Positions 5,650 to 45,546 of a stretch of DNA of 45,546 nt are shown here, piece after piece. A program made the translations under genes and the position numbers. Numbering within the stretch: position 1 is the first letter of the stretch; each line of letters opens with the position of its first letter. Origin of the DNA: Guillardia theta CCMP2712 (taxonomy: Eukaryota; Protista; Cryptophyta); assembly GCF_000315625.1 (NCBI RefSeq), contig NW_005434560.1, positions 198,077 through 243,622 on the forward strand, read 5' to 3'. The notes beneath the pieces were generated by a model. That model was not told where the DNA came from and did no database searches. It was given only the letters and a program-made list of their open reading frames with translations.

Positions 5650-7532
5650 TCACCTGACCGGTCACGTGACACATCACGTGACCGAGACAAGACTTTTTTA
5701 TATCGCAGATCCAAAAACCCATAGGACATTTCTCCCAGGGGGAAGAAAACCTCCCTTGACCCCCCTGTTTCTCGACGGATCCTGCCGGCCGGGCCGGTCA
5801 GTAGACCGACTGCAGCCTTCAGCCCCGCCTCAGACCCCCTGGAGGCCCGCCAGGAGGCTAAGTGTCCGGAGATTGGCCGGGGGCCTGATCTCTCCGGGCG
5901 GCCGTGACCGGTCAGCGGACCGTGTCAGCAGGCCCGTGACATGTCAGCCGGCTGACAGGGGCCGTGACCCGGCTGACAGGCTCACCTGACCGGTCACGTG
6001 ACACATCACGTGACCGAGACAAGACTTTTTTATATCGCAGATCCAAAAACCCATAGGACATTTCTCCCAGGGGGAAGAAAACCTCCCTTGACCCCCCTGT
6101 TTCTCGACGGATCCTGCCGGCCGGGCCGGTCAGTAGACCGACTGCAGCCTTCAGCCCCGCCTCAGACCCCCTGGAGGCCCGCCAGGAGGCTAAGTGTCCG
6201 GAGATTGGCCGGGGGCCTGATCTCTCCGGGCGGCCGTGACCGGTCAGCGGACCGTGTCAGCAGGCCCGTGACATGTCAGCCGGCTGACAGGGGCCGTGAC
6301 CCGGCTGACAGGCTCACCTGACCGGTCACGTGACACATCACGTGACCGAGACAAGACTTTTTTATATCGCAGATCCAAAAACCCATAGGACATTTCTCCC
6401 AGGGGGAAGAAAACCTCCCTTGACCCCCCTGTTTCTCGACGGATCCTGCCGCCGGGCCCGTCAGTAGACCGACTGCAGCCTTCAGCCCCGCCTCAGACCC
6501 CCTGGAGGCCCGCCAGGAGGCTAAGTGTCCGGAGATTGGCCGGGGGCCTGATCTCTCCGGGCGGCCGTGACCGGTCAGCGGACCGTGTCAGCAGGCCCGT
6601 GACATGTCAGCCGGCTGACAGGGGCCGTGACCCGGCTGACAGGCTCACCTGACCGGTCACGTGACACATCACGTGACCGAGACAAGACTTTTTTTATATC
6701 GCAGATCCCAAAAAACCCATAGGACATTTCTCCCAGGGGGAAGAAAACCTCCCTTGACCCCCCTGTTTCTCGACGGATCCTGCCGGCCGGGCCCGTCAGT
6801 AGACCGACTGCAGCCTTCAGCCCCGCCTCAGACCCCCTGGAGGCCCGCCAGGAGGCTAAGTGTCCGGAGATTGGCCGGGGGCCTGATCTCTCCGGGCGGC
6901 CGTGACCGGTCAGCGGACCGTGTCAGCAGGCCCGTGACATGTCAGCCGGCTGACAGGGGCCGTGACCCGGCTGACAGGCTCACCTGACCGGTCACGTGAC
7001 ACATCACGTGACCGAGACAAGACTTTTTTATATCGCAGATCCAAAAACCCATAGGACATTTCTCCCAGGGGGAAGAAAACCTCCCTTGACCCCCCTGTTT
7101 CTCGACGGATCCTGCCGGCCGGGCCCGTCAGTAGACCGACTGCAGCCTTCAGCCCCGCCTCAGACCCCCTGGAGGCCCGCCAGGAGGCTAAGTGTCCGGA
7201 GATTGGCCGGGGGCCTGATCTCTCCGGGCGGCCGTGACCGGTCAGCGGACCGTGTCAGCAGGCCCGTGACATGTCAGCCGGCTGACAGGGGCCGTGACCC
7301 GGCTGACAGGCTCACCTGACCGGTCACGTGACACATCACGTGACCGAGACAAGACTTTTTTATATCGCAGATCCAAAAACCCATAGGACATTTCTCCCAG
7401 GGGGAAGAAAACCTCCCTTGACCCCCCTGTTTCTCGACGGATCCTGCCGGCCGGGCCCGTCAGTAGACCGACTGCAGCCTTCAGCCCCGCCTCAGACCCC
7501 CTGGAGGCCCGCCAGGAGGCTAAGTGTCCGGA
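5650..7532 (+). repeat. Satellite A array continued, about 5.7 copies
   Basis: 332-bp units; from the unit at 6330 onward they carry GGGCCCGTCAGTAG instead of GGGCCGGTCAGTAG. Confidence 0.98.
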
Positions 7533-8083
7533 CGGCCCGCACGGGCCTGTAGCTCGCCGGAACCCTGGATTTTCAACTCAATTTCCAGTTGAGTTTCGAC
7601 CTCGAAAAAAATCCTATACGTATAAATACGTTGCAAGTTTTTTCTTCCCGGCTTCTCTCCCATATCATTTTATACCTCCCCGCGACCCCTCGGCTCAAGC
7701 GCCACACTGGCATTTTGTCGGGAGGCTCATAACCTGTTTCCACGGGCCCGGACGGCCCGCACGGGCCTGGAGCTCGCCGGAAAGGCCCGGAATATGCCCA
7801 AAGGATGTTAATCAGGCCAATCCAAAGCAAAGAGACATAATCAGGACTTTTTGGAGAGATTTCCGATCAATTAGTACATGAACTGGTTTATAGGTAGAAA
7901 AACCCTGGATTTTCAACTCAATTTCCAGTTGAGTTTCGACCTCGAAAAAATCCTATGCGTATAAATACGTTGCAAGTTTTTTCTTCCCGGCTTCTCTCCC
8001 ATATCATTTTATACCTCCCCGCGACCCCTCGGCTCAAGCGCCACACTGGCATTTTGTCGGGAGGCTCATAACGGCCCGGACGG
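7528..8083 (+). repeat. Satellite B, 340-bp monomer, forward orientation, about 1.6 copies
   Basis: AACCCTGGATTTTCAACTCA recurs at 7561 and 7901. Joined to SatA through a CCGGA microhomology (7528-7532). Confidence 0.93.
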
Positions 8084-8695
8084 GTACGAAACAGTAGACG
8101 ACACGGCCGAGACCTGGAGGACCTTTCTCCCGTTGGACGACCGTGCAAGGTTCTGCGCGTTCACCCCGGCGGTCACCGCCTGCATGTTGGTCCAGGACTG
8201 AGACTGCAGGGCCACGATCACCGCCGTCGTGTTCGGGGGGAGGTCCGTCCCGTTCCCGATCGCCTGCATGAGCCTCCGATGGTTGCCCGAAAGCCCGCTG
8301 CCAGGGTCCACATGGTTGGTCAGGATCTGGGTGACATAATCGATAACAAGGCTGCTGACCTCGGCCCCGTACGTCGCGACGTACAGCTCGATCTGCTTCT
8401 TAAGGTAGTCCTGCAGGCTCGTCCCCGCCGGTATGTCACCCTCGATGTTCAGGCGGATCAGGGAGTAGTAGGTCGTGTCCTTGGGCGGTGCCTTCGCGGT
8501 GGACTGAGCCTGCGTGAGCTGCCCGGGGCTCGGGGTCGCAAGGATCGTTGTCACGGGGACGAAGCCAGCCGATGTCTCCGCGAGTGTGGAGTTCGAGGCA
8601 TTGACAAGCAGCGTGGGGTCGGTTTCATTGCATTGCACTCCACCCAGCCCAAACACCAGGAGGTCAAGAGTCAACAATAATGTAGCCAGCCGCAT
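8066..8695 (-). pseudogene. 3'-truncated gene for a secreted or surface protein (signal peptide, S/T/P-rich stretch), virus-like
   Basis: ATG at 8695 gives MRLATLLLTLDLLVFGLGGVQC, with TATATAA 30 nt upstream. The frame runs into SatB at about 8083 and stops inside the satellite. Confidence 0.65.
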
Positions 8696-9228
8696 TTGCG
8701 TTCGATTTGGGTTTCGACTTATATACCACCAATACGGCCACCACTCGAAAGAACAGCGCAAACAAGGGGAAAACCACAAACGGGCTCAGGGCAAGCAGGG
8801 GAACAAAGATGACACTGCCATCGTCGCTCTCATAACCGACTGGAGTATCATCCTGACAGTGCAGCAAATCGAGTTGTGTTGCCATCTCGGTCGCGGGCAA
8901 CTTCAAGTCCGTGGGTGGGGCTTGGGCTAAAACCTCGGCCTTAGCTACAGCTACAACCTCAGCCTCAGCTACAACCTCAGCTTCACCAAGAGCCTTCTCA
9001 ACAAACTTCCTCAACGCACTCTTGAACTCACCCTTCTTGAAACTAATCCCAACAACACCAACCTTAGATCCCTTCCCATACACTCGGCGAAGACTAGCAC
9101 GGTGGCACACAACAGCAACCATCACTCTCGCTACCAAAAACGTGGCAATGTGACTCTTCAGAGACCACAGACCGTTTTAAAGGCCGGGAGATTTTTACTA
9201 CAGGGGATGAAAGAACCACCCCACCCTA

Positions 9229-9392
9229 CCAAAAAGTCCTGATTATGTCTCTTTGCTTTGGATCGGCCTGATTGACATCCTTTGGGCATATTCCGGGCCT
9301 CTCCGGCGAGCTCCAGGCCCGTGCGGGCCGTCCGGGCCCGTGGAAACAGGTTATGAGCCTCCCGACAAAATGCCAGTGTGGCGCTTGAGCCG
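9229..9392 (-). repeat. Satellite B partial unit, inverted
   Basis: Reverse complement of about 7690-7853. Confidence 0.93.
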
Positions 9393-9555
9393 TTACGGTT
9401 CTAGGCGGGTTCCTTCACCAAGTTGGTGAAGGCTGCCCAAAATAGATTTCCGTTTGAGCGTTGACTAAACATTTGTACCAAGGCTTTTTTTTCACTACAT
9501 TCTTCCAAACACATCTATTGCCGGGACAAACAGCTAGTATTTACAACGGAACGCA

Positions 9556-10593
9556 ATGCGGAGTTCATGTCTGCAGGCTTCTTTCTCAATTTTACTTGTG
9601 TTTGTGTTAATGCGTTTATTGAATACATTTGGGTTTACAAGTATTCACAGCAACACGTTGCCTATACGGATAACTTCCAATCACAACGGTGTACAAATGT
9701 CCAACATCTCGATCTATGACTGCGTCCTTTTCAATAATGAAATCGCTATGTTGTACTTTCGCATGCATGAACTCTTTGATGTTGTGGACTACTACGTTGT
9801 TGTTGAAGCAACCACAACATTCTCGGGAAAGTCCAAGAGTCTCATAATACCAGAGAAAAGACATCTGTTCAAGAAGTTCGAAGAGAAGCTTATCTACTTT
9901 CCAATCGTCCATGACCTCAATTTCAGTGATGCATGGCAAAGAGAGCAATTCCAACGTGATTGCATTTTGCGTGCTATCCCTCATTCTTTGAAAGATCAAG
10001 ACATTGTAATGTTACATGATTGTGACGAAATCCCAAATAGAACCATTCTTGAGTTCATTCGCAGCGGTAAAATTGCATTAAATCCAAATGGATGTACCTT
10101 TCCCATGGATTTGTGGTACTTTTCTATGAACTTCCCTCCGTTTGCTGACGTTTGGCGTCCTCCCAATCGCGGGGCAGTACCTTTCAAAAAGATTCGCTCA
10201 TACCTGCAACACATAAGTTTGGATAAGGAAAGGATATCACGATTCTCATCTGTCAGCATTCGAATTTACTCTCGACTTGCAGATTGTCCAACGGTTGCAA
10301 TTTGTCAAGGAAAAACATCTGTTTATGGTGCTGTATCGTGTGGTGGAGGATGGCATTTCAGTTATTTCGGCAACGAAAGATTTATTCGCAGTAAATTAGC
10401 TTCTTTCAGTCATCAAGAATATAACAAACAACAAGTATGGAGTCAAATTAAAGAGAAATTGACAGTTGGCGGCGACTTGTTCGGTCGCAAACAACCTCTC
10501 CGTTTGCCAGGCAAATACCAATTCCCCGCTTGCTATGATGTGTTGAACAAATCCTTGCAAGATACAAATTTCGAACCTTCCATTCGTCTGTAA
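9556..10593 (+). CDS. Glycosyltransferase family 17 protein (beta-1,4-N-acetylglucosaminyltransferase, MGAT3-like), type II membrane
   Basis: 345-aa uninterrupted ORF with N-terminal TM anchor and GT17 motifs YDCVLFNNE, VVVEATTTFSG, WQREQFQR, DCDEIP (DxD), GGWHFSY, KLASFSHQE. Confidence 0.9.
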   Translation: MRSSCLQASFSILLVFVLMRLLNTFGFTSIHSNTLPIRITSNHNGVQMSNISIYDCVLFNNEIAMLYFRMHELFDVVDYYVVVEATTTFSGKSKSLIIPEKRHLFKKFEEKLIYFPIVHDLNFSDAWQREQFQRDCILRAIPHSLKDQDIVMLHDCDEIPNRTILEFIRSGKIALNPNGCTFPMDLWYFSMNFPPFADVWRPPNRGAVPFKKIRSYLQHISLDKERISRFSSVSIRIYSRLADCPTVAICQGKTSVYGAVSCGGGWHFSYFGNERFIRSKLASFSHQEYNKQQVWSQIKEKLTVGGDLFGRKQPLRLPGKYQFPACYDVLNKSLQDTNFEPSIRL

Positions 10594-10913
10594 TACACTT
10601 TTCTCCTTCATACAAAATGCTTCATATGGTCCTAAGTACGAAACAGCGTTTGCACAAATTTCACTCCAAGATAGCAAAAGATGACACATCACAAATGTGT
10701 TTGCTGTTGTCATGGAACCCGTGACAACCAACAAGCATTGGAATTTTGTTGTTGCAAGGACGTAGCGTTATAGAACTGTGGCTGTTGGGCAACAGAGAGT
10801 GGGGAAAATCTGATGAGGACACATGTTCACCGCCTACCAGCTCCCCCTCCAGGGGTGCATCAGAGACATGGCTTTGAGGTCTGCCCGTCCGATAGTCAGG
10901 TTGTACAAGAGAT

Positions 10914-11140
10914 CTCCCGACAAAATGCCAGTGTGGCGCTTGAGCCGAGGGGTCGCGGGGAGGTATAAAATGATATGGGAGAGAAGCCGGGAAGAAAAAA
11001 CTTGCAACGTCAACTGGAAATTGAGTTGAAAATCCAGGGTTTTTCTACCTATAAACCAGTTCATGTACTAATTGATCGGAAATCTCTCCAAAAAGTCCTG
11101 ATTATGTCTCTTTGCTTTGGATCGGCCTGATTGACATCCC
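10914..11140 (-). repeat. Satellite B partial unit, inverted, running into the gap
   Basis: Reverse complement of SatB with an internal deletion. The first 34 bp duplicate 9359-9392. Confidence 0.92.
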
Positions 11141-11142
11141 CA

Positions 11143-11242
11143 NNNNNNNNNNNNNNNNNNNNNNNNNNNNNNNNNNNNNNNNNNNNNNNNNNNNNNNNNN
11201 NNNNNNNNNNNNNNNNNNNNNNNNNNNNNNNNNNNNNNNNNN
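11143..11242. other. Assembly gap, 100 N (probably unsized)
   Basis: Run of N. Confidence 1.
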
Positions 11243-11257
11243 TCACACCGTTGCCCG

Positions 11258-11535
11258 CTATGAGTCTTTTCTAAGGCCGCCCTTGCGGGCCCGCCTCAGT
11301 ATATATATGAGTCGGATGACACAAGGAGGTATCAGATCAGTCTAGATGGAGGCCAATGAGCCTCTCCATGACCTCAGATGGAACTAAGATGCAGGCTCAC
11401 CTCGTTCACTCCTCATAGCGTTGCACGTTATGAGTTTTTTCTAAGGCGGGCCCTGCGGGCCCGCCTCAGTATATATATGAGTCGGATGACACAAGGAGGT
11501 ATCAGATCAGTCTAGATGGAGGCCAATGAGCCTCT
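11258..11535 (-). repeat. Satellite C (171-bp monomer), inverted, two partial units
   Basis: Reverse complement of the unit at 17730-17900, with a short non-matching filler at about 11384-11425. Confidence 0.92.
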
Positions 11536-12268
11536 GATTAGTGTGGCGTGCAACAGTACAACCTCTTGCGCTGGTACGAGCAATGGTGATAATTACAGTG
11601 GGGGTCCATCAAGTTTAGTAACCCTCAAGCCAGAGGAGAACATGTGTGAGCAGTCCCAATTGTCAGCTGCGACAGAATCGGCCATCTGGCACCTTCGGCT
11701 CGGACATCTGGAAGCAAAGATTCAAAAATTACTAGCCGATTCGGTGAAGTATATCACGTACAACAGGCGCCTAAAGAAATCTCCTTGTCACATCTGTAGA
11801 ATAGCAAAGTTCGTCTCACGGCCGATCCATCGACAGTCGGATTTCCGACAGGAGCGGGCATCAGAGGTCAATCAAGTCTGGCATATTGATTTGAAAGACA
11901 TGATTGTACAATCCGAGCCTGGTGGTTATAGATATTTCTTGATCATTGTGGACGTCTTTTCTGGATTTGTGCGAGTACGACCTATGCGCACGAAAAGTCA
12001 GACGGCTGCTATCCTCATGGAAATACTGTTACAAGAGGATCGTGACAGCTCTCGTCCTAAGGTACAGAAGATTGTATCTGACAACGGTTCAGAATTCAGC
12101 TCTGTGGAGCTGGAGAGCTTTTTCGTTGATCGTGGGATACGACATGACAAAATTCCAGAGTACTCTCAGGTCTACAATGCGTTCGCTGAACGTGGAATCA
12201 GAAGCGTGACGTCGATTAATCGGACGTTATTGCGTCAGAGCGGTGTACCGAAGTCGAAGTGGGAATAC
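11536..12268 (+). pseudogene. pol: Copia pol part 1: GAG-pre-integrase and integrase core, 5'-truncated
   Basis: WHLRLGH, CHICRIAK, WHIDL, VSDNGSEF, AERGIRS (DDE). The ORF-track start (11516) lies in SatC. Confidence 0.92.
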
Positions 12269-12495
12269 TGTTAGGGGTTACGTAAGCGGTTACGAATACT
12301 TCAGTCAACTAGCTGTCTTATCCGGTCGGTTTGGTTGGTTTGGTAGGTTTTGGTCGAATAAAATGGATCCGAACTTTCTATACGTTCAGTGAGCGCGATT
12401 GTGTTGAGGTTCCTGTTCGCTTGTTAACGCAAGTTATCAAGTTGGTTCAAGTTCACAGAGTCAAAGCACATCATCAGGATTGTCAATCCCTAACA
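12269..12495 (+). repeat. 5' LTR
   Basis: TG...CA ends with an 8-bp terminal inverted repeat. Identical by eye to 14118-14344. Confidence 0.96.
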
Positions 12496-12593
12496 TTGGT
12501 AGCGTAAGGTTTGGTTTTTGTTCGAAGTAATTGCGGATTGCGACAATTTGATTTGATTTGATCGACAAGGAGCTTGAAAGGTAACCTCTGGAT

Positions 12594-13983
12594 ATGCAAT
12601 CGGATGTAGAAAGGATAAGAAGGTCTCCTGGAGATGGTCCTCTTGGAAGTTCAGGCTTGGCAGTCATGCTTGACAACTTTAGAAGGAGTTTCGATGAGGA
12701 AACGTCTGAAGACAAGACGATGAGGGAAGTTACGACGGTACCTTCTACCTCAGAAGAGGATTCGAACGGAAATCAGCGAGACGTCGCGGGATTTTCGAGG
12801 ATTAATATACCTTCTTATGATGGATCGGTCACGCAACAAGTGCGCGACAGGGAGGGCGCAGTGGACTTGGAAATTTCCAGGATTGCGTCTCCGGCAGGTT
12901 CGACCCGGCCGAGGTTCGAATCAGTGCAGTTTGAAGAATTGGTCGCTGCAAACAAGAAGTTGCGAGAAGAATTGCAACTCGCAATGGACATGCAAGTAAA
13001 GTATGAAGCTTTCGTCAAGGAAGTGATGTTTCGTAAGGAAAGAGAGCTCGTCGAGACAAAACAGGAAATCTCTGTCCTTAGGGAAGAAAATAAAAAAAAT
13101 GTTCGAGGAAATGATGCAACGGTTCAGATTAAATGAATCAGGAGCAGTTCAATACCTTCCGATCAAGGAACCAAGAGGGGCTGATGCAACGTGCAAGCAA
13201 AATGATACGAGCATGTCGAATGACATGTCAAGTCAGCATGTCAAGCAGCAGTCTTCCCTTGTGAAGTTTCATTCCAAGGATATTTCTCGATTTAATGGAG
13301 AAATGACTCTAGAATATTCCGTTGCAAGTTGGTTTGGGGAGCTTGAGTTTCAATTCCAGCGTCAAAGAATTCCTCCAGATCAAAAGGTTGACATCGCTGC
13401 AACATTAGTTGGTAATCGTGTGAGGAATTGGTTGCAAACATTGCGTGGCGAGGATAGATTAATTTCCACACAAGGTACTTGGGAATCATTCAAATCGTTG
13501 CTGGTGAAGGAATATTTGTCGTTGTCGCACTTGCAGTATATTCTGGGTGAGATTCAACGTACGATACAAGGGTCAGAGGAAAAGACTTCGGATTTTGTCA
13601 ACAGGTTTTCAGCTTTAGCAAATCATTTTATTGCTTGTTGCATGGTATTATTTCATGGACAAGGACAAGTCGAGACAGCTTGCACGAGGTTTGGTCTTGA
13701 ACGGTATTTCGCACAGAATTTGTTCGATGAGGTGACCGCGAGTTTCGTCATGAAGTTGTTGATTGACTTGGAAAAGCAAAATGTGAACAAGACTTTGAGT
13801 ATTGGGAGTTTGTTGCCAGCATTGTATCGAGAAGCTAAGTCCATGGATTTGACAACCGATGCGTATAGGAATGACAGGTCAACGCATCATGAGGTTTCGT
13901 ACGATGATGAGTCAGTGGAGGATACCGACGAAGATTCTCAGCATTCATCTTCGACTCAGGATGAGCAGGACTTACGTGAATAA
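12594..13983 (+). CDS. gag: Gag-like protein (coiled coil plus retrotransposon capsid), frameshifted at an A8 run near 13092-13099
   Basis: ORFs 12594-13136 and 13099-13983 join if one A is removed (..EENKKMFEEMM..). Capsid pattern WFGELEFQF..IP..KVDIAATL..VRNWL..WESFKSLLVKEY is Ty3/gypsy-type. Confidence 0.75.
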
Positions 13984-14117
13984 CATTGGCCCAATGCACT
14001 TCGCGCTACTCAATTGAAATGACTTGAGTTGGCTGCCGTTTTCTTGTTATGCAGTATTTTAATGATCAGCGAAGTTCATAGAGATGTTTCTCAGATGATA
14101 ATGCGCTTGGGAGCGTA

Positions 14118-14344
14118 TGTTAGGGGTTACGTAAGCGGTTACGAATACTTCAGTCAACTAGCTGTCTTATCCGGTCGGTTTGGTTGGTTTGGTAGGTTTT
14201 GGTCGAATAAAATGGATCCGAACTTTCTATACGTTCAGTGAGCGCGATTGTGTTGAGGTTCCTGTTCGCTTGTTAACGCAAGTTATCAAGTTGGTTCAAG
14301 TTCACAGAGTCAAAGCACATCATCAGGATTGTCAATCCCTAACA
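14118..14344 (+). repeat. 3' LTR
   Basis: Direct copy of 12269-12495, followed by TSD AATAC. Confidence 0.96.
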
Positions 14345-35074: not shown

Positions 35075-38000
35075 CTAGGGTGCCACCTCGCAGTAGAACC
35101 CGTCGCTGCACGGTACGCAGTCCCCGTCCACGTCGTAGTACCCTGGCGCACAAGCACAGCCCTCGGGGATGCTGGTGTTGACCCGTGAGCGGCGGACCAA
35201 ACCGCAGTCGTAGCAGACCGACATGCCCGTCGCGTTGTTGAACTTACCCGGTGGGCACTGCAGACAGTACGCGGCCCGGTACGTCTCCGAGTAAGTCCCG
35301 GCACCGCACTCGGGGCAGCCACCACCCTCGCCGTACTGCATCCGCGTGCCAGGAGGGCAGTCTGTACAGGCTGAAGAACCCTGCGGCGCATACTGCCCAT
35401 GGGCACAGGGCGTGCAGTTGGTGGATACGCCGACGGAGTAGCTGTTCAAGGGGCAAATGGATATGCAAGGGCAGGCGAAACCACCGTTGCTGTAGTGCAT
35501 GCCGAGCGGGCAATAGGCAGGGATATCCGACTTCGGCACGCAAATCCCTGCGGCAGCGCCGCCGCAACCCACCAGCACCTCGGTCGTCTGGCAAATGGGA
35601 CACGGGGTGCAATACCCGGATGTGTCGTTCTGACAGCCCGCCCGGTACTGGTTCCTTAGGCAGGCAGGGCACGCCTCGCACAAACCAGGGCCGAACCGTC
35701 CGCATCCCACTCTGTACTCACCCTCGGCGCACCCAACACAGGGCTCGCAAGCGCTTGTGCAGTCCCTCCTGTACTCCCCAACGGGGCAATCCGTGCAGGA
35801 CTGGCAATACCCGGGCGATGTCCCACCGCACCCCACAAGGGTCTCAAACGCGCTGCAAACCGTGCAAGGGTAGCAAGAGCCAGCGCTGCTCCCACCGCAG
35901 CCGGCAGCGTAATTTCCAGGGGAACAAGACGCACAGGCCTTGCAATTGCCCGCGGACTGCCCCCCGCAACCCAAAGCATACCGATTGTCACCGCAGTAAT
36001 CGCAGCTCTCACACGAGCCCTGGCTGCTACCGTAGCAGCCCATCCTGTATGTCCCGTCCCCACACGCCCCACAGTCGATGCAGAAGGTTTCATTCGACAC
36101 GCCGTTGCAGCCAGGGAAGTACTGCCCGGCGCTACAGGAAGGGCACGGCCTGCAGGCGCCCTGGCTCCCACCGCCACATCCATACCTGTACTGGCCCAGG
36201 GCACAGCTCGGGCACTGCTGGCATGTCCCATCCACAAGGTAGTACCCCTCGCAGCAGGAAGACCCCTGGACTGAGGTCGAACCCCTAGGGCAGGGATTGC
36301 AGGAGACCTGCCTGGCCTGGTTCTGGTAGGTACCAACGGGACACTGCTCACACACACCGGGGGACGGAAGGTAACTCCCCGCGGGGCAGTCCGAGCAGAA
36401 AGTCTGCTTCACGTCCGCAGAGAACGTCCCGAACGGGCATGTGTCGCACCAGTAGTAGCCGTACTCCGCGTTGTACCGGCTGTATTTCCCGACTGAACAG
36501 GACTGGCAGCTCGTCAGGGTGCTATCCGGCTCCTCCCCCTGTGGGCACGCCACACAGCCAACGTCCGCGGCAAGCGAGAAGGACCCCTGCGGGCATGGCT
36601 TGCAGTAGTACATGCTTGCATCAGACAACCCAAGCTTCAGGCACACCGATGGCAGAATGCTCGCACTGGGCTCGTAGGCAACGTAGTAGTTGGCCTTGCA
36701 GGAGCAGCTGTACAGCATCACCCCGTTCAGATTCTGCGCAAGGGACTGCTGGTCCAGGGCCTGGCTGACGCAGAACGAGGTGAATCCCTTCATACAAGAG
36801 CCTTGCTCTACCCAATGCTTGGTGTAATCGTAGGTCACTACATAGGGCAGGCTGGAGGGCATAGTAGAACAGCTCCTATCGACCGAGCCATACGCCGTCA
36901 GATCGATGTATTGACCGGAGGGACAAGCCCCGCCCCCCGACCGACAGCTCCCCGACACCAGATACCTGTTGTACAGATACCCATGCACACAAGTCGTCAC
37001 ACAGACCTCGCTCACTGGAATCTGATCCGCGTGGCATTGCACGCAGGCGGTGGACCCCGCTGGGGCATAGCTGTCAGTCAAGCACGAAATGCACGTCTCA
37101 TCCTTGGTGCTCGAGTACGTCCCTGCACTGCACTGGGCACAGGTCCCAGTCACGGGTGAGGAGCTTCCAGACCACGTCCACCCATAGCCAGGGCAGCAAA
37201 CCTTCCCGGTATATCCCGTGGACACAGCGCCACTGCAGGCAAGGCAGGCGGTGCTTCCCTGATCGGGCTGGTAGCTGCTCGCCCCGCACTCGCTGCAATG
37301 GGTCTGACCCGTGCTTGGCTGCTCGCTACCCCTGGGACACGGCAAGCAGGAGAGGTAGCGATTCTCCGCAGGCATGAAGGTGCCAGCCGGGCAGCTGCTA
37401 CAGGTTGTCGAAGAGCAGCTGTCACGGTAGCTCCCCGCAGGGCAGAACACCCAATCGGTGCACTTGCTTGGGAGAGTCTCACTGAAGAATTGCAGGGGTT
37501 TGTACGTGCAAACACCGGGGTTCCGCTCCTCACAGTACTTCAAAATGTCTCCCTCCGAGCAGGAGGACGTGTTGCAAACTGAACAGGCCCCGGAGGTGCT
37601 CGTCCCACAGAGCGCCGACATGTACTGGCCACTCGGGCACATCGTGCAGGGCTGGCACTCCCCGGGAGACGTTCCACCGCAGCCAACCCGGAAGCTAGAC
37701 GAAGAGCAAGGAAGGCAGTCGGAGCAGGCACCAGACGAAATACCCCCGCATACAACAGACGTATACTGGTTGGCACCGCAGCTCAGGGTGCAATCCTTGC
37801 AGGTCCCGGCCACTGTCCCCCCGCACCCCTCCAGGTACTGCCCGCTGTTGCAATCCGAGGTCGGACAGGGGACACACGATCCGGATTCCAAACCCCCACA
37901 CCCCACTAAGTACGTCCCAGGATCGCAAGTGGCACACGGCTGGCATGTCCCTTCCGAGGTGCCGGAGCAGCCCTTCCTGTAGTCCCCAGCAGAGCACGAC

Positions 38001-38426
38001 TGGCAAGGCATGCAGCTCCCAGCAGTGAGGTTGCCGCAGGCACTCAGATACTGGCCACTAGAACACTGCAACGTCGGGCAGGCGGTGCAAGTCCCAGGGT
38101 TCACACTCACACAATCCTTGTTGTACTCCCCGGCACCGCATGAAGCACATGGCACGCAGGTACCTGGGTTCGTCCCCGAGCAATTGGCCCTGTATTGGCC
38201 TAACGGGCATGAGCCACAGAGGTTGCAGACCCCCGCACTCACCCCACCACATCCAGTCAAGTACTGACCGCTGCTGCAAGTGTGGGTCGAACAAGACACA
38301 CAAGTACCTTGGCTTATATTCGCACAATCAGCCCGGTAAGTGTCGGGTGGGCAGGATAGCAATAAACACGACTTACATGAACCGCCATACACACCACTGC
38401 ATCCATCCCTGTAATATGTCGGCGGG
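35075..38426 (-). pseudogene. C-terminal part (over 1100 aa) of a giant Cys-rich repeat protein, 5'-truncated by SatC
   Basis: Dozens of CxxGxYxxGCxGxxxGxCxxC repeats. The frame stays open upstream of the tracked GTG as PPTYYRDGCSGV up to the satellite; no signal peptide. Confidence 0.82.
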
Positions 38427-38848
38427 CTCCATCTAGACTGATCTGATACCTCCTTGTGTCATCCGACTCATATATATACTGAGTCGGGCCCGCAGGGCCC
38501 GCCTTAGAAAAAACTCATAACGTCGGGAGCCCCACCGCAAACATACCCCCAGATCCCCTCCCACCTTCCATCTGAGGTCATGGAGAGGCTCATTGGCCTC
38601 CATCTAGACTGATCTGATACCTCCTTGTGTCATCCGACTCATATATATACTGAGGCGGGCCCGCAGGGCCCGCCTTAGAAAAAACTCATAACGTCGGGAG
38701 CCCCACCGCAAACATACCCCCAGATCCCCTCCCACCTTCCATCTGAGGTCATGGAGAGGCTCATTGGCCTCCATCTAGACTGATCTGATACCTCCTTGTG
38801 TCATCCGACTCATATATATACTGAGGCGGGCCCGCAGGGCCCGCCTTA
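38427..38848 (+). repeat. Satellite C block, about 2.5 units
   Basis: 171-bp period. Confidence 0.97.
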
Positions 38849-39148
38849 TTAATTCCTTTTCTTTTTTTTTTCTTATACATGTCTAATTATATAATAATAA
38901 ATGTATTATATGTTAGTACTAATATACATTACTCAATACATATAGTACTACCCACAAGGCAGGGTTCACCCTCCACAGCCCATGCTTTACATAAACGGCC
39001 GAGGAAAGCGCCGAGGCTCAGAGTAGGCCGCTACATGCATGGGCAGGCGGCCACACTGCAGGATGCCTGCGAGAGAGAAGAGGCGGACACCGAGCAAGAC
39101 GGCTTCGTCTACCCCCCACGCGCACAGATCGAGGATAAAGACAGAGGT

Positions 39149-39853
39149 ATGGACACGGAGGAGCCGATGGATCACACATTCCAGTGGATCTCGGCGATTC
39201 AAAGCGGCTGCATCATCGTCTCCTTCGCGTTCTACACCTCACTGGCACTCTCCAGGGACGTCAGGGAGGAGAAGTACAGGAACAACATCGATTGCGTACT
39301 GCAGACCATGGAGAGCATGACGGTGGACGCAATCACAGTCCTATTCGTCCTCGCTGGCTTCTCCGACTCGCACAGGAGGTGGAACGACGGCCTAAAATGG
39401 CCGGAGATCGCGTACAGCGTCAACGCGGAGATGTACCCCCACATCGCGCTCGTCAACACCCTCCTCATGCCCTTCGGGATGGCGGTGGACGGGCTGTGGT
39501 CGAGCCCGATGACATGGGTCATCAACCTTTCATCCATCCTCTATCTACCACCGTTCCTGGAGCTAAGGCAGGACTCCCGCTACCGCCTCTTCAACGAGTC
39601 GACGGCCATCCTCATGACCCTCCTCCTCTGCAGGACGGCCTACCCGCTGGCGAGGTCAGCGATCAACAGCACCATAAACAACTTCCCCGCACACCACGAG
39701 AAGATCAACATGGCCAACGTCATATTCCAGACGGCGGTGTCCTGCATTATCACCTCGATCAATCTCCGAGACAACCAAGCCTTTCAGCACCCTCGTAACC
39801 TCACTGAACACCATCAACGAGACGCAGCAGGGCCTTGGCATCTGCCCGAATGA
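39149..39853 (+). pseudogene. Multi-pass membrane protein, possibly acyltransferase-3 (OafA)-like, 3'-truncated
   Basis: Likely start MDTEEP at 39149. AITVLFVLAGF, EMYP and FNEST..AYPL resemble the VDxFFVLSGF, RxYP and NxxxWSL..YP motifs. Natural sequence is lost near 39770. Confidence 0.4.
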
Positions 39854-40457
39854 GGCGGTGTATCAGCGAGGCACTTCCACTGTCACTGGCCAAAGGTCCG
39901 ATAGGACAGACCTTACAGGAAACCGGCAGATCATCAGCGGGACGGTGGACTCCACGGGCGCCACGACGGTGTACGCGGACGGGTCAGCTGGGACTGCTTC
40001 GGTGCTCCCCTCCCTTGTCTCTACCTCGGATGGGTACATCGAGATTGGCAGCCTGTTCGAGGGTTACATCCAGGAGCTGATCGTCCTGGGGACGGCAGTC
40101 ACAACAACGCAGCGGGAGGCGATCCACCGGTACCTCTCCAAGAAGTGGCACGTCTCGCCGCACCGGATGGACTCGAACGGGGACGGGACGTCGGACTACT
40201 GGGACCCTTCGGGGGTGCCGCCGTGCAGCGTGTGCTCGGCGGGCTCGAGCAGCGCCCTGGGGGCGTGCCAGGCCTGCCAGGCGGGGAAGTACAGCCCGTA
40301 CGGGGGGCGGTGCGACTGGTGCCCGGGCAACTCGACCTCGTACCCCGGCGCGGTGTCGATCGCCCAGTGCTCGTGCGTGCCGGGCTACTACCGGACGAGC
40401 CTGACCACGTGCGAGGCCTGCCCTGCCGGGTTCTACTGCCCTGCCGTTTGTAGCTAG
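39775..40457 (+). pseudogene. C-terminal fragment of a LamG/concanavalin-like plus Cys-repeat protein, 5'-truncated
   Basis: The frame is open upstream of 39858 (FSTLVTSLNTINETQQG..). FEGYIQELIV..QREAIHRYLSKKW is a typical LamG-like domain end, followed by Cys repeats. Confidence 0.6.
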
Positions 40458-40551
40458 GTGGTTCTTGAAAATAAAATTTATCCTCTTCCTTTTTTTGTGT
40501 CCAGGGGTTCCATCCCGTCCATTTAAGACGCAGGGGGTTGTCTGGGAGAGG

Positions 40552-42684
40552 ATGAGGGCATGGATCACGCTTGTGTTCGCGCTCGGGTTGCTGCCCACCG
40601 GGGGCGACTGCTCCCTGTGCGTTGTAGGGTACTACGATGACGGCAACGGGGTGTGCGTCCCGTGCCCCCTGCATACCACAACGTCTGTGTTGGGAGCGAA
40701 GGGTTCGACCGCGTGCGATATGTGCGCGACAGGTTATTACAACCCAATGATGGATTACCGCGGTCCACTCGTCCAGATCATCCGGGACAAGCCGCCCTGG
40801 GGGGTGTACCTTGCCAGGGACTACAACAACGGGCAGATACCGGACGCGCAGGGGGTTCGCGCCGCCGCCACGGTGACGGGGGGCACCATCTCCCACGGGA
40901 ATGCATCGGGGAACGGAGCCAACGGGCCGGTCTCTTACGTGTCGGGAGATAGCAGCACCAGTATTCTGTTCCCTTCCGGGAGTATCCCGGACACCTTCAC
41001 GATATGTGGTGTGGCTCGTGAGACCAATGTCAACCCTGTCAATAATTTCGGCCTGGGCTTGATCTTTGTGGGTATGAACAACCCGTGGTTTCTGGGATGG
41101 TACTACAGCCTGGGGAGGGCATACTTTGGCAAGGATATGACGGACAACACGAACAAGTACAAGAACTACATGGATTGGATGGTGGTCTGCGGCACGAACG
41201 GGGGTGTCCACCCCAACAACATCAAGACGGCCATGCTGTCGGCTACCGGGTATACGATATCCAACTACGGGACGGCCGACGGTGGGAGCGGCGGCGACAC
41301 CCTTGCGATCAACGCCGGGTCCTTTTTCCCCCCCACGGGCAGCGAGTTGCTGGAACCCTTTTCTTTCCACTCCGTGTACATCTGGAACCAGACCCTGACC
41401 TCGGGTGAGATGGACAGCGTCATGAAGTATCTCCTCTATATCCTGGACGTGGGAGAGAGTGATTTAAAGTGCGATACCTGCGATTTCGGGTTTTACAACG
41501 CAGACGGCATTTGTGTGCCATGTCCAAGTGGCTTGAGTACCTCGCAGCGTAACTCCACTCTTTCTGACTGCCATTGCCCTGTTGGGCATTACCTTGATTC
41601 GAATGGTTATTGTTGGAAGTGCCCATGGGACTTTACCACCGAGACATCAAATGCTGACAATGTCACGTATTGCTTACGTAGGTATACCAGCACATCAACC
41701 AGCTATCAGGTGACATTCGATGTGGACGCCCGTATGGATGTATTGATCGTTGGGGGTGGAGGGGCTGGTGGATACTTCAATTCTCCTGTTTATATTTCGA
41801 TGTGGTCAATCTATTGGACCTATGGCGTCGGAGGTGGCGGTGCTGGTGGTATGGGGATAGGATGGCTGTTGCTAAAAAGCAATGTTGTTTACCAGATCAC
41901 GATTGGCGATGGTGGAAAGTCACAGGCATTTTCTTCTGGGACAGGGACAGGTCTAGACAGTGGATTGAGCGGTGGGGACACGACAATTATCGGGGGTGAT
42001 ATTGATGAGATAGCGTACGGCGGTGGAGGTGGTGGTGGGTTGGACTCGAGAGCTTCATGGACTGATACCCAAATCTCACAAACAGTAAAGGGAAAAGATG
42101 GTGGAAGTAGTGGGGGTTCTGCGAACAGCAAGAAATATAACAACGTGCCTGTTGTGAGTTACGTATCACCTGCTGCGACTGCTACTAAGGGGTCATCGAG
42201 GTTAACTACCCGACTTGGTGCTATGACTTACTACGGGAATAATGGAGGTGTGAGCGCAACGGATGAGGGTAGTTCTGGCGGTGGTGGCGCGTCGGAACCC
42301 GGAGAAGATGCTACCTCATCAAATCCGACGGGTCGTGCCGGTGGTAAGGGGATGCAATGGTTGGATGGTAAGTATTATGCGGGAGGTGGCAGCGGTTACA
42401 TAGATACTGCAACCCCACCAAGTTATACGTTGGGAAGTGGGGTGTCTGGCACGGGTGGGGGTGGAAGCATAGCAACCCTATCTTGTTGCCCTTGGATTGT
42501 CTTTAATCAAGATGGATTTTCGGGTACCGTCGTGTTCAAGGCCCAGGGTTGTAGTCCGGGAAGCTACATCGCCGATGCGACCAGCAATGTGTGCGTGCAG
42601 TGCAGTGCATCTTCATGTGCAAGCGATCAATATCTTCAGGGATGCCAAGGATATCATCCAGGCGCCTTTAGAAAAAACTCATAA
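40552..42684 (+). pseudogene. N-terminal part of a giant secreted protein (signal peptide, Cys repeats, lectin/LamG-like domain, glycine-rich fibre-like domain), 3'-truncated by SatC
   Basis: MRAWITLVFALGLLPTGGDC with ATTTAAG 30 nt upstream. Gly-rich domain DVLIVGGGGAGG..YQITIGDGG..AYGGGGGG..YYAGGGSG. The last residues FRKNS and the stop come from SatC. Confidence 0.8.
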
Positions 42685-43080
42685 CGTCGCGGAGCCCCAC
42701 TGCAAACATACCCCCAGATCCCCTCCCACCTTCCATCTGAGGTCATGGAGAGGCTCATTGGCCTCCATCTAGACTGATCTGATACCTCCTTGTGTCATCC
42801 GACTCATATATATACTGAGGCGGGCCCGCAGGGCCCGCCTTAGAAAAAACTCATAACGTCGGGAGCCCCACTGCAAACATACCCCCAGATCCCCTCCCAC
42901 CTTCCATCTGAGGTCATGGAGAGGCTCATTGGCCTCCATCTAGACTGATCTGATACCTCCTTGTGTCATCCGACTCATATATATACTGAGGCGGGCCCGC
43001 AGGGCCCGATTAGAAAAAACTCATAACGTCGGGAGCCCCACCGCAAACATACCCCCAGATCCCCTCCCACCTTCCATCTG
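42663..43080 (+). repeat. Satellite C block, about 2.4 units
   Basis: 171-172-bp period. Confidence 0.97.
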
Positions 43081-43831
43081 CCGTGACCCGGCTGACAGGC
43101 TCACCTGACCGGTCACGTGACACATCACGTGACCGAGACAAGACTTTTTTATATCGCAGATCCAAAAACCCATAGGACATTTCTCCCAGGGGGAAGAAAA
43201 CCTCCCTTGACCCCCCTGTTTCTCGACGGATCCTGCCGGCCGGGCCCGTCAGTAGACCGACTGCAGCCTTCAGCCCCGCCTCAGACCCCCTGGAGGCCCG
43301 CCAGGAGGCTAAGTGTCCGGAGATTGGCCGGGGGCCTGATCTCTCCGGGCGGCCGTGACCGGTCAGCGGACCGTGTCAGCAGGCCCGTGACATGTCAGCC
43401 GGCTGACAGGGGCCGTGACCCGGCTGACAGGCTCACCTGACCGGTCACGTGACACATCACGTGACCGAGACAAGACTTTTTTATATCGCAGATCCAAAAA
43501 CCCATAGGACATTTCTCCCAGGGGGAAGAAAACCTCCCTTGACCCCCCTGTTTCTCGACGGATCCTGCCGGCCGGGCCCGTCAGTAGACCGACTGCAGCC
43601 TTCAGCCCCGCCTCAGACCCCCTGGAGGCCCGCCAGGAGGCTAAGTGTCCGGAGATTGGCCGGGGGCCTGATCTCTCCGGGCGGCCGTGACCGGTCAGCG
43701 GACCGTGTCAGCAGGCCCGTGACATGTCAGCCGGCTGACAGGGGCCGTGACCCGGCTGACAGGCTCACCTGACCGGTCACGTGACACATCACGTGACCGA
43801 GACAAGACTTTTTTATATCGCAGATCCAAAA
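43080..43831 (+). repeat. Satellite A array resumed, about 2.3 units, running into the gap
   Basis: 332-bp units at 43117, 43449 and 43781; the two complete units carry the GGGCCCGTCAG variant. Confidence 0.97.
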
Positions 43832-43843
43832 GAGTATACTTCG

Positions 43844-44722
43844 NNNNNNNNNNNNNNNNNNNNNNNNNNNNNNNNNNNNNNNNNNNNNNNNNNNNNNNNN
43901 NNNNNNNNNNNNNNNNNNNNNNNNNNNNNNNNNNNNNNNNNNNNNNNNNNNNNNNNNNNNNNNNNNNNNNNNNNNNNNNNNNNNNNNNNNNNNNNNNNNN
44001 NNNNNNNNNNNNNNNNNNNNNNNNNNNNNNNNNNNNNNNNNNNNNNNNNNNNNNNNNNNNNNNNNNNNNNNNNNNNNNNNNNNNNNNNNNNNNNNNNNNN
44101 NNNNNNNNNNNNNNNNNNNNNNNNNNNNNNNNNNNNNNNNNNNNNNNNNNNNNNNNNNNNNNNNNNNNNNNNNNNNNNNNNNNNNNNNNNNNNNNNNNNN
44201 NNNNNNNNNNNNNNNNNNNNNNNNNNNNNNNNNNNNNNNNNNNNNNNNNNNNNNNNNNNNNNNNNNNNNNNNNNNNNNNNNNNNNNNNNNNNNNNNNNNN
44301 NNNNNNNNNNNNNNNNNNNNNNNNNNNNNNNNNNNNNNNNNNNNNNNNNNNNNNNNNNNNNNNNNNNNNNNNNNNNNNNNNNNNNNNNNNNNNNNNNNNN
44401 NNNNNNNNNNNNNNNNNNNNNNNNNNNNNNNNNNNNNNNNNNNNNNNNNNNNNNNNNNNNNNNNNNNNNNNNNNNNNNNNNNNNNNNNNNNNNNNNNNNN
44501 NNNNNNNNNNNNNNNNNNNNNNNNNNNNNNNNNNNNNNNNNNNNNNNNNNNNNNNNNNNNNNNNNNNNNNNNNNNNNNNNNNNNNNNNNNNNNNNNNNNN
44601 NNNNNNNNNNNNNNNNNNNNNNNNNNNNNNNNNNNNNNNNNNNNNNNNNNNNNNNNNNNNNNNNNNNNNNNNNNNNNNNNNNNNNNNNNNNNNNNNNNNN
44701 NNNNNNNNNNNNNNNNNNNNNN
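43844..44722. other. Assembly gap, 879 N
   Basis: Run of N. Confidence 1.
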
Positions 44723-44749
44723 GGGCCTTGTTGCCGCTTATCTCTTTCA

Positions 44750-45516
44750 TCATAACGTGGGGCAGCCCCATTGCAAACATACCTCCAGATCCCCTCCCCC
44801 TCCTCATCTGAGGTCAGGGAGAGGCTCATTGGCCTCCATCTAGACTGATTTGATACCTCCTTGTGTCATCCGACTCATACATATACTGAGGCGGGCCCCC
44901 AGGGCCCGCCTTAGAAAAAACTCATAACGTCGGGAGCCCCACTGCAAACATACCCCCAGATCCCCTCCCACCTTCCATCTGAGGTCATGGAGAGGCTCAT
45001 TGGCCTCCATCTAGACTGATCTGATACCTCCTTGTGTCATCCGACTCATATATATACTGAGGCGGGCCCGCAGGGCCCGCCTTAGAAAAAACTCATAACG
45101 TCGCGGAGCCCCACGGATTTTATGACCCCAGATCCCCTCCCACCTTCCATCTGAGGTCATGGAGAGGCTCATTGGCCTCCATCTAGACTGATCTGATACC
45201 TCCTTGTGTCATCCGACTCATATATATACTGAGGCGGGCCCGCAGGGCCCGCCTTAGAAAAAACTCATAACGTCGCGGAGCCCCACCGCAAACATACCCC
45301 CAGATCCCCTCCCACCTTCCATCTGAGGTCATGGAGAGGCTCATTGGCCTCCATCTAGACTGATCTGATACCTCCTTGTGTCATCCGACTCATATATATA
45401 CTGAGGCGGGCCCGCAGGGCCCGCCTTAGAAAAAACTCATAACGTCGGGAGCCCCACTGCAAACATACCCCCAGATCCCCTCCCACCTTCCATCTGAGGT
45501 CATGGAGAGGCTCATT
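44750..45516 (+). repeat. Satellite C array, about 4.5 units
   Basis: 171-172-bp period. The first unit, next to the gap, is degenerate. Unique sequence resumes at 45517. Confidence 0.96.
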
Positions 45517-45546
45517 CATAGCGTTGACATTTTGCTTTTTCTGCTT

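Follow-up and report, generated by a model that had tools for sequence, protein, structure and literature searches.

Among the closest published counterparts of the locus considered here is LE-Chr15 of Aurantiochytrium limacinum, an integrated, near-complete mirusvirus-like element of 269 kb that lies beside rDNA and telomeres, between tandem repeats with units of 366-529 bp. Collier et al. (bioRxiv 10.1101/2023.06.15.545109) ascribe its endogenization to recombination at a chromosome end rich in repeats. Mirusvirus MCP homologues have already been reported in the assembly of Guillardia theta, in clade E03 of Cryptophyta (Zhao et al., PMC10827195). In green algae, decaying giant endogenous viral elements have been invaded by transposons and repeats, according to the account of Moniruzzaman et al. 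2020 given in PMC12768974.

The window, which is the whole stretch of DNA that was analysed, comprises the last 45,546 bp of nuclear scaffold JH993078.1 of the cryptophyte alga G. theta CCMP2712 and is identical in sequence to that scaffold end. It is satellite-rich: in the assembly, five unique blocks are interspersed with tandem repeats of three families, whose units measure 332, about 340 and 171 bp. This layout had been proposed in a preliminary description and was recovered here by TRF and self-BLAST, with the blocks lying within a few bases of where they had been placed. The accompanying claim that such an architecture was undescribed needs qualifying, given the published repeat-bracketed integrant of Aurantiochytrium and the mirusvirus capsid genes reported in the G. 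theta assembly. The explanation that is considered reasonably probable is that this repeat-rich, and probably heterochromatic, scaffold end consists of pre-existing arrays of three satellite families that took in foreign or mobile DNA by ordinary routes.

Satellite arrays and assembly state

The satellites were mapped by TRF and self-BLAST, with SatB delineated by self-BLAST and by reading the sequence directly, and the repeat copies in the window are 94-100% alike. SatA has a 332-bp unit and is present, by TRF and self-BLAST, as about 10 copies at 186-3521, 5.7 copies at 5650-7532 and 2.3 copies at 43080-43843. SatB, whose unit is about 340 bp, amounts to only 1.6 copies on the forward strand at 7528-8083, where it contains the palindrome GGCCCGCACGGGCC, and recurs as inverted, reverse-strand pieces at 9229-9392 (found by self-BLAST) and 10914-11142, the latter with an internal deletion of 35 bp. 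SatC has a 171-bp unit and forms forward-strand arrays, detected by TRF, of 2.2 copies at 17540-17922 (with a displaced SatC scrap of 16 bp ahead of it), 2.5 copies at 38424-38848, 2.4 copies at 42663-43080, where it is joined directly to SatA, and 4.5 copies with 94% identity at 44723-45516. An inverted SatC block on the reverse strand at 11243-11535, found by self-BLAST, is more diverged, with 88% identity to the other SatC blocks overall and 100% over its final 111 bp.

Two assembly gaps interrupt the window. The first (11143-11242, 100 N) separates inverted SatB from inverted SatC; this junction is unsequenced and the link between the two is by scaffolding only. The second (43844-44722, 879 N of estimated length) lies between SatA and a terminal contig of 824 bp that is almost pure SatC and whose array stops 30 bp short of the scaffold end. 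No real gene spans either gap, and the listed ORFs that cross the second are artefacts of the Ns. Neither a telomere nor rDNA is present within the window, and RNA families and, by Pfam, acquisition genes were not found there. The assembly is an old draft, in which the SatC blocks of 2.2-2.5 copies may be collapsed long arrays.

Mobile elements and the smaller blocks

Two elements within the window arrived by their own transposition mechanism, leaving target duplications. One is a non-autonomous TIR DNA transposon at 3521-5649 within SatA, recognised from its perfect 24-26-bp terminal inverted repeats, its target duplication of 3-4 bp and the resumed phase of SatA. Its ORFs contain no Pfam domains. 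It is located just to the left of the range covered by the preliminary description (7528-45546). The other is a complete small LTR element on the forward strand at 12269-14344, which has 227-bp LTRs that are 100% identical, TG..CA ends, a 5-bp target duplication and a gag-like ORF only, the Pfam Retrotrans_gag match of which is weak.

This second element is nested in a Ty1/copia retrotransposon remnant, also on the forward strand, at 11536-17539. The remnant, identified by Pfam matches to rve, gag_pre-integrs, SH3_retrovirus and RVT_2, retains the integrase, its SH3-like end and the reverse transcriptase. It is cut short at both ends and lacks terminal repeats that would represent outer LTRs, as well as a gag and a protease of its own. 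Together with the one nested insertion, three or more stops or changes of frame break its pol into five ORFs. It had been held that the inserts lack LTR or TIR ends of their own, which is the case for the five blocks as wholes but overlooks the TIR transposon in SatA and the LTR element inside the copia remnant.

A gene-sized insert on the forward strand at 9393-10913 carries a glycosyltransferase family 17 ORF (Pfam GT17, E = 4e-27). The ORF is intact at 9556-10593 and the gene is transcribed, as its exact 345-aa product is present in the MMETSP transcriptome set. Its GC3 is 0.41 and its relatives are only 31-35% identical. The unique block at 8084-9228 has no assigned origin; its reverse-strand translations include an ORF with a predicted signal peptide and N-glycosylation motifs that is open into SatB, and its GC3 of 0.77 resembles that of the viral block, with no Pfam match and no relative in IMG/VR. 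A 3.8-kb insert on the forward strand at 38849-42662, with Pfam matches to Ephrin_rec_like and Gly_rich_2, encodes a membrane protein and a cysteine-rich, glycine-rich protein whose ORF is open into SatC. It possesses neither TIR nor LTR, and a viral or host origin for it is unproven. Four of the inserts had been described as virus-like or retroelement DNA; this holds for the copia and 20.5-kb blocks but not for 8084-9228 and 38849-42662, which have no diagnostic match for either.

The 20.5-kb block and a second locus

The largest unique block extends for 20.5 kb at 17923-38423 and is gene-dense; both strands carry ORFs, and long ORF-free stretches are absent. It is colinear with the Logan contigs L002 (78-90% nucleotide identity) and L041 (93%) and with the metagenome contig L011 (71-80% amino acid identity). 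The block is mosaic in structure, with three or more segments that each have their colinear counterpart on a different related contig. The relatives of its genes reside on gene-dense, Pfam-dark metagenome contigs of 22-238 kb that have a prokaryote-like coding density. Many of the block's genes keep intact ORFs, and in six of them dN/dS relative to a close relative is 0.10-0.24, which points to purifying selection. Were the SRR30639608 contigs of algal nuclear origin, such low values could also reflect the conservation of host genes in two cryptophytes. The earlier statement that the cargo decays is thus partly true, with the transcribed, intact GT17 ORF and these six genes as exceptions.

Pfam finds no viral hallmark gene within the block, in which neither an MCP nor a portal or terminase was recognised. 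The sole hallmark gene fold identified belongs to a capsid triplex-like gene remnant on the reverse strand at 28351-29175, assigned from its relatives, a modelled fold and coverage counts. The remnant corresponds to only the N-terminal part, some 40%, of a ~520-550-aa protein that has 266 relatives, and the coverage counts indicate one truncation. When a full-length relative was modelled, the top Foldseek matches were herpesvirus triplex chains, with probabilities of 0.90-0.99 against herpesvirus triplex proteins but low TM-scores (0.2-0.38). On this model, the family looks as if it folds like the capsid triplex proteins of herpesviruses or mirusviruses.

A long forward-strand ORF at 30288-34076, annotated as GUITHDRAFT_117723, matches a transcript of Hanusia phi at 60% identity and a 1551-aa relative at 29%, and gave no sequence match in Pfam or PDB. 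Two adjacent cysteine-rich ORFs on the reverse strand at 33627-38392, in which Pfam detects Ephrin_rec_like and TNFR repeats, match weakly to a 584-aa protein on the mirusvirus-like contig L007, and the upstream end of the pair is open into SatC. The colinearity with Pfam-dark contigs and the triplex-like fold of the shortened gene together identify the block as an endogenous fragment of a mirusvirus-like large DNA virus, an identification with which the MCPs published for this assembly agree.

SatA is also present on scaffold JH993205.1, where it is 95-99% identical to that of the window and abuts mirusvirus-like DNA of the same kind at its broken edge. The satellite there ends ~1.1 kb from a paralogue of the triplex gene, and colinearity with L011 breaks off at this same position. 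The paralogue adjoins an ORF with a VP39-like cap methyltransferase domain, and the locus also borders a 6.4-kb gap.

Junctions and comparison with known systems

Satellite phase continues across three of the inserts: that of SatA across the TIR element with the duplication of 3-4 bp, that of SatB on either side of the GT17 block, where 33 bp of SatB are directly duplicated at the flanks, and that of SatC across 38849-42662 with a duplication of ~6-7 bp. By our own arithmetic, three such near-continuities would arise together by chance with a probability of ~5e-4, and the resumption of phase with short duplications argues that these inserts landed in pre-existing arrays. Across the 20.5-kb block the SatC phase is discontinuous, with 43-46 bp of a unit missing, and both this block and the copia remnant are bounded by satellite and have genes severed at their edges. 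Five block edges truncate genes: the ORFs previously noted there as open (8083, 11536, 17922, 38426 and 42666) each have at least 200 codons and meet a stop no more than about 35 nt into the satellite. These severed genes, the resumed phases and the second SatA-virus junction agree with the proposal that the locus is a passive sink for broken DNA. Fragments may have been captured at chromosome breaks via end joining or template switching, the viral DNA perhaps deriving from a cryptophyte mirusvirus lineage that replicates in the nucleus, and the scarcity of genes in satellite DNA would let the insertions persist. The arrays could then have been shuffled and shortened by subsequent inversions and unequal exchange, while concerted evolution would hold the repeats uniform as the inserts drift. 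Dedicated acquisition machinery is unnecessary to explain the locus.

It is conceivable that the junctions are real but that long arrays have been collapsed and unique pieces from separate locations chained by the assembly, such that the alternating archive is absent as drawn. The SatC blocks are all of 370-425 bp, less than one Sanger read, with near-identical copies within each; the window lies at a scaffold end, contains two N gaps and closes with a contig of satellite; and the second locus likewise borders a gap. Chimeric joins should, however, give arbitrary phases instead of the resumed ones, single reads can span blocks of up to 425 bp plus both flanks, and the TIR element acts as an internal control whose SatA context was assembled correctly, making this an unlikely account. 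The 20.5-kb block might alternatively be ordinary host DNA of the cryptophyte lineage, with only the copia and TIR elements foreign. Whilst the expressed counterpart of the long ORF in H. phi, the low dN/dS and the lack of a Pfam viral hallmark gene would suit such an origin, it is rendered quite improbable by the gene-dense layout, the metagenome contigs on which the relatives lie, the match of the triplex-like fold to herpesvirus capsid proteins, the VP39-like domain at the paralogous locus and the truncation of one gene relative to its relatives.

Telomere-integrating herpesviruses enter a chromosome by recombining their own repeats with those already in it, a route also proposed for the Aurantiochytrium integrant, and the satellites could similarly be part of the mirusvirus-like genome or homologous to its ends. 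Viral DNA does abut SatC in the window and SatA on JH993205.1, and the LORE-TEARS tandem repeats of Aurantiochytrium offer a published parallel. Yet the related contigs (L002, L005, L007-L013 and L041) contain no satellite sequence, the satellite motifs are absent from IMG/VR, the junctions fall within viral genes and not at genome ends, and the same satellites hold the copia remnant, the TIR element and the GT17 gene; integration of this kind is judged improbable. The preliminary description also envisaged a dedicated memory of the repeat-spacer or piRNA-cluster type, in which foreign DNA would be captured by a satellite-marked cluster and supplied to silencing by small RNAs or heterochromatin. 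Three kinds of foreign DNA (viral, retroelement and DNA transposon) within 45 kb and the second satellite-virus junction would accord with this, but spacer size (1.1-20.5 kb), repeat type, phase and orientation are all irregular, the fragments occupy both strands, an intact, transcribed gene is included, two transposons inserted themselves, the viral genes appear to be under purifying selection and not in neutral decay, and neither acquisition genes nor RNA families were found in the window. Such a function is very improbable and the proposal is not upheld.

The locus also differs from CRISPR arrays, to which the alternation of repeats and unique DNA gives only a superficial likeness. The G. 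theta repeats are tandem satellites of 171-340 bp from three unrelated families in both orientations, and its 'spacers' include whole genes and have no associated acquisition genes. Animal piRNA clusters and pericentromeric 'transposon graveyards' are collections of nested, truncated mobile-element fragments in repeat-rich, gene-poor DNA. The G. theta locus likewise accumulates such fragments but, unlike piRNA clusters, has few transposon families, no strand bias and an expressed gene inside. With the giant endogenous viral elements of green algae, as far as these are portrayed in PMC12768974, it shares fragmented large-virus DNA in an algal nucleus mixed with mobile elements. Those elements belong to the Nucleocytoviricota, whereas the G. 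theta block is Mirusviricota-like and many of its genes have intact ORFs and signs of purifying selection against a close relative. The endogenous mirusvirus signals of Zhao et al. (PMC10827195) come from the same G. theta assembly, although that survey was anchored on MCPs and the 20.5-kb block has no recognised MCP. Compared with LE-Chr15, the G. theta locus is a rearranged fragment of ~20-24 kb with a truncated capsid gene, is without telomere or rDNA in the window and has transposons in the same arrays. In both, a protist chromosome carries herpes-like or mirusvirus-like DNA between tandem repeats whose units measure several hundred bp.

The satellite framework

The window makes up the final 45,546 bp of the 243,622-bp Guillardia theta CCMP2712 nuclear scaffold JH993078.1, and a locus taken from that record matches window 20288-43879 at every base. 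Three tandem-repeat families were borne out by Tandem Repeats Finder and by self-BLAST of the window. SatA, with a unit of 332 bp, occupies 186-3521, 5650-7532 and 43080-43843 (10, 5.7 and 2.3 copies, respectively) and is also found on a second Guillardia theta scaffold, JH993205.1. SatC has a 171-bp unit and occurs as four blocks of 2.2-4.5 copies at 17540-17922, 38424-38848, 42663-43080 and 44723-45516, together with an inverted and more diverged copy at 11243-11535. The satellite copies share 94-100% identity and form the head-to-tail arrays of a homogeneous unit that are characteristic of satellite DNA. SatB, with a unit of around 340 bp, consists only of 1.6 tandem copies at 7528-8083 and two inverted pieces at 9229-9392 and 10914-11142, and its standing as a satellite is weak. 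Between the repeats lie five unique blocks, present as the preliminary description had placed them.

Every SatB and SatC unit contains one copy of a GC-rich palindrome, GGCCCGCA(C)GGGCC (14 hits, where 0.01 would be expected). It lies at 7534-7547, 7754-7767 and 9316-9329 in addition to its place in each SatC unit, and is not present in SatA. In SatC it represents the core of a longer hairpin, a feature that prompted consideration of this repeat as a Helitron-like unit, which was dropped on account of the scattered junction phases, the single junction beside the hairpin and the lack of a Rep/helicase gene. The idea that the satellites are arrays of RNA genes (5S, snRNA, spliced leader or tRNA-derived) was also ruled out, as the window contains no Rfam families and no tRNAs.

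The assembly contains two gaps within these repeats. Gap 1 falls between the inverted SatB and the inverted SatC, which are thus linked by scaffolding only, and gap 2 has SatA on one side and an 824-bp terminal contig of almost pure SatC on the other. Neither gap is spanned by a real gene, and the ORFs called over gap 2 are artefacts of Ns. The SatC blocks are uniformly short and may be arrays that have collapsed in the draft assembly. A displaced 16-bp scrap of SatC is found at 17540-17555, ahead of the SatC block, and the last SatC copy is followed at the scaffold end by 30 bp of non-satellite sequence (45517-45546), which hints at one further junction beyond the assembly. No telomere-type repeat arrays, adjacency to which would mark the region as subtelomeric, are found within the window; the scaffold end is that of a draft, and a telomere may be nearby.

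The 20.5-kb block of probable viral origin

The largest of the blocks, at 17923-38423, is on balance probably the fragment of a mirusvirus-like element that became endogenous, and one virion-module fold has been recognised in it. Its ORFs are crowded on both strands and long ORF-free stretches are absent. Outside the satellites, every stop-to-stop ORF of 90 codons or more was scanned against Pfam on its own, including the adjacent ORFs of the large block that annotated gene models splice together. These 149 ORFs gave only three groups of hits, namely glycosyltransferase family 17 (GT17), Ty1/copia domains, and cysteine-rich Ephrin_rec_like/TNFR repeats with a glycine-rich domain. No DNA-virus capsid, packaging ATPase, polymerase or integrase was found by Pfam among the 149 ORFs, and the identity of the block as a Polinton-like virus or nucleocytovirus was rejected on this basis. 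For an HK97-fold major capsid protein, portal, terminase or protease there was no Pfam or PDB sequence match with any ORF. No PDB sequence match was obtained for the long ORFs or for the family profile, and IMG/VR was scanned without a hit for four proteins, one alignment of the family and two satellite motifs.

The recognised fold is that of a triplex-like protein, of which a gene remnant at 28351-29175 on the minus strand retains approximately the N-terminal 40%. A search of 1.84 billion representative proteins gave 266 relatives of this ORF, and a profile search more than 120; these are typically 520-650 aa in length and carry no Pfam domain. They are encoded on contigs of 22-238 kb from freshwater and other metagenomes, with prokaryote-like coding density and almost blank with respect to Pfam. 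The family as a whole has hundreds of metagenomic members. Its core of about 400 aa is strongly conserved and its C-terminus varies, extending some proteins to 1500 aa. There is no Pfam model for the family, and IMG/VR pattern scans found none of its members. When modelled alone, the 275-aa fragment of the window gave no fold match. A model of a full-length relative, P0155, was built with 59 aligned relatives and has a core pLDDT above 90. Against the PDB its top matches are some 40 chains of triplex size in herpesvirus capsid structures (~300 residues; best E = 6e-4, probability 0.90), and against BFVD the best-ranked proteins are subunit 1 of the herpesvirus capsid triplex and equivalents of it (probability 0.94-0.99). 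The TM-scores of these matches are low (0.2-0.38), and the assignment therefore depends on the consistency of the match list. A triplex protein outside the herpesviruses is a mark of the Mirusviricota (PMC12768974, PMC10827195), and Zhao et al. (PMC10827195) placed this G. theta assembly among the holders of mirusvirus major capsid protein homologues, in clade E03. On the strength of the model, the predicted triplex capsid protein is what would be expected of an endogenous mirusvirus, the window carrying its N-terminal part only.

The relatives also allow the organisation of the block to be compared. Logan contig L002, from run SRR30639608, is colinear with approximately 18,990-27,470 of the window at 78-90% nucleotide identity, and contig L041 from the same run encodes a full-length triplex-like gene with 93% nucleotide identity over the shared part, such that contigs of this run are 78-93% identical to the viral block. 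Six genes in the stretch colinear with L002 have dN/dS values of 0.10-0.24 at dS values of 0.30-0.47, indicating purifying selection since the window and L002 copies split; the low ratios could stem from a comparison of two viruses, of two endogenous copies or of two host genomes. On a related contig of 38.8 kb, L011, the triplex-like gene (80% aa identity) and the gene upstream of it (71%) keep the order that they have in the window, and L011 and the 238-kb contig L012 both carry neighbouring homologues in matching order. A further contig, L007, has three gene families in common with the block. To judge by their coding density, these related contigs may be free viruses. Set against its relatives, the block proves to be mosaic, made up of three or more colinear segments, and it is rearranged inside as well as at its edges.

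Three independent metagenome contigs each carry a Snf7 (ESCRT-III) gene (L005 5428-6096, L009 16044-16679 and L013 15832-16494) that lies downstream of the triplex-like gene, a few genes away, which suggests that the linkage is conserved in this viral lineage. Elsewhere in the block, the 1262-aa ORF at 30288-34076 is 100% identical to GUITHDRAFT_117723, and the sister alga Hanusia phi has a transcript that matches it at 60% identity. A relative with 29% identity is encoded beside a giant, cysteine-rich protein on a Logan contig that is rich in GC, and the pairing of the two genes thus recurs in a distant relative.

A triplex paralogue, GUITHDRAFT_121630, is encoded at a second mirusvirus-like locus of the G. 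theta genome, on JH993205.1 (L006), where it adjoins a 2028-aa ORF with a VP39-like cap 2'-O-methyltransferase domain. Along L006 6733-21359 a SatA array is followed by the triplex paralogue, the 2028-aa ORF and then genes like those of L011 and L012, with which the locus is colinear at 77-88% aa identity. The SatA array is 95-99% identical to that of the window and stops about 1.1 kb from the paralogue, at the exact point where colinearity with L011 ceases, and this edge therefore represents a second satellite-virus breakpoint. The locus borders a 6.4-kb assembly gap.

The remaining blocks and the arrival of the inserts

The block at 9393-10913 contains an intact GT17 ORF of 345 aa (9556-10593). 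The exact 345-aa product is found in the MMETSP transcriptome collection, so the gene is transcribed and is not decaying, and since the annotated product has 176 aa the gene model appears to be too short. The GC3 of this block is 0.41, unlike that of the other blocks. The nearest metagenomic relatives of the protein are only 31-35% identical and lie on AT-rich contigs, densely packed with genes, which could belong to giant viruses or to bacteria, and the exact protein was not found on any other contig on record. The blocks at 8084-9228 and 38849-42662 resemble the viral block in GC3, and the second of these encodes cysteine-rich repeats weakly similar to those of the 20.5-kb block, but neither has a diagnostic relative.

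The block at 11536-17539 holds a Ty1/copia remnant on the plus strand, in which the Pfam domains rve and gag_pre-integrs, SH3_retrovirus and RVT_2 follow the order of a copia pol gene, with the integrase and its SH3-like end ahead of the reverse transcriptase. This pol is scattered over five ORFs, which implies one nested insertion and at least three frame changes or stops. Outer LTRs or other terminal direct repeats, and a gag and protease of its own, were not found in the block, and in the absence of terminal direct repeats the outer element is regarded as a remnant. Nested within it at 12269-14344 is a complete 2.1-kb LTR element with TG..CA ends, 227-bp LTRs and a 5-bp target duplication, which codes for a gag-like ORF only. 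The two LTRs are 100% identical, which suggests a recent insertion mediated by the enzymes of another element. The statement that none of the inserts has LTR or terminal inverted repeat (TIR) ends of its own thus holds for the outer copia element but not for the nested one. The SatC copies that flank the copia block are of opposite orientation, which indicates an inversion. Just to the left of the range in question, inside SatA, lies a 2.1-kb non-autonomous DNA transposon (3521-5649) with perfect 24-26-bp TIRs and a 3-4-bp target duplication, which doubles as an internal assembly control.

The phase of the satellites was mapped at every junction. SatA resumes across the TIR transposon with the 3-4-bp duplication, inverted SatB resumes across the GT17 block with a 33-bp direct duplication, and SatC resumes across 38849-42662 with some 6-7 bp duplicated. 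On the two sides of the 20.5-kb block the SatC phase is discontinuous, with 43-46 bp of a unit missing. The joint chance of the three near-continuities is around 5 in 10,000 (9/332 x 67/340 x 15/171), and it follows that these three inserts entered pre-existing arrays; the resumption of phase is also evidence against chimeric joins at these places. At the five boundaries where the preliminary description had reported ORFs cut mid-domain, a long ORF was indeed open across the junction, stopping no more than about 35 nt into the repeat, and the blocks concerned are therefore fragments that did not move by transposition of their own. Satellites are absent from all of the related contigs examined, and their motifs are absent from IMG/VR.

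Two explanations had been offered for this arrangement, a passive sink for double-strand breaks and a dedicated memory locus of a repeat-spacer or piRNA-like kind. A memory locus is not supported, and the structural features tested speak against it. The blocks are irregular in size, as are the repeat families, phases and orientations between them, and the fragments lie on both strands; neither acquisition genes nor RNA families were found in the window. Moreover, the region includes an intact, expressed gene and viral genes under purifying selection. In view of the GT17 gene and the six viral genes, the notion that the cargo decays is only partly true. The passive sink agrees with the simplest account, in which repeat-rich chromatin would tolerate and collect insertions. 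Transposons would enter by their usual mechanism, and broken viral, retroelement and gene DNA would be caught at breaks with short duplications or deletions. The arrays may then have been reshuffled by unequal exchange and inversions, with concerted evolution keeping the repeats uniform.

Relation to known systems

Among the viruses of plankton, mirusviruses are an abundant group that has been recognised only recently, and to our knowledge few hosts have been confirmed for them. A satellite-embedded fragment in a model cryptophyte, together with near-identical relatives in one public sequencing run, provides a handle on a cryptophyte-mirusvirus pair, and the triplex-like family, for which there is no Pfam model, could be an extra marker for such viruses.

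A CRISPR array has short regular direct repeats, uniform spacers and acquisition genes, whereas the window has tandem units of 171-340 bp from three families in both orientations and inserts of 1.1-20.5 kb, with no acquisition genes found, and so is not CRISPR-like. In a piRNA cluster, fragments of diverse transposon families are nested in large numbers and often share an orientation. The window contains a copia remnant, an LTR element nested in it, a TIR element and a viral fragment, one of each, on mixed strands. The broader idea of a new eukaryotic 'memory array' is not supported. The closest published parallel to the window is found in Aurantiochytrium, where a 269-kb mirusvirus-like integrant lies between tandem repeats with units of 366-529 bp at a chromosome end (bioRxiv 10.1101/2023.06.15.545109). 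It is conceivable, though rather unlikely, that mirusvirus DNA, and perhaps foreign DNA of other kinds, lands or recombines preferentially in the satellite arrays of G. theta. In that case the two junctions would reflect a repeat-guided entry shared with Aurantiochytrium and similar to the integration of some herpesviruses at telomeres, and such clusters might seed silencing. Taken with the Aurantiochytrium case, the two satellite-virus junctions raise the question of whether repeat-rich regions are the usual entry point.
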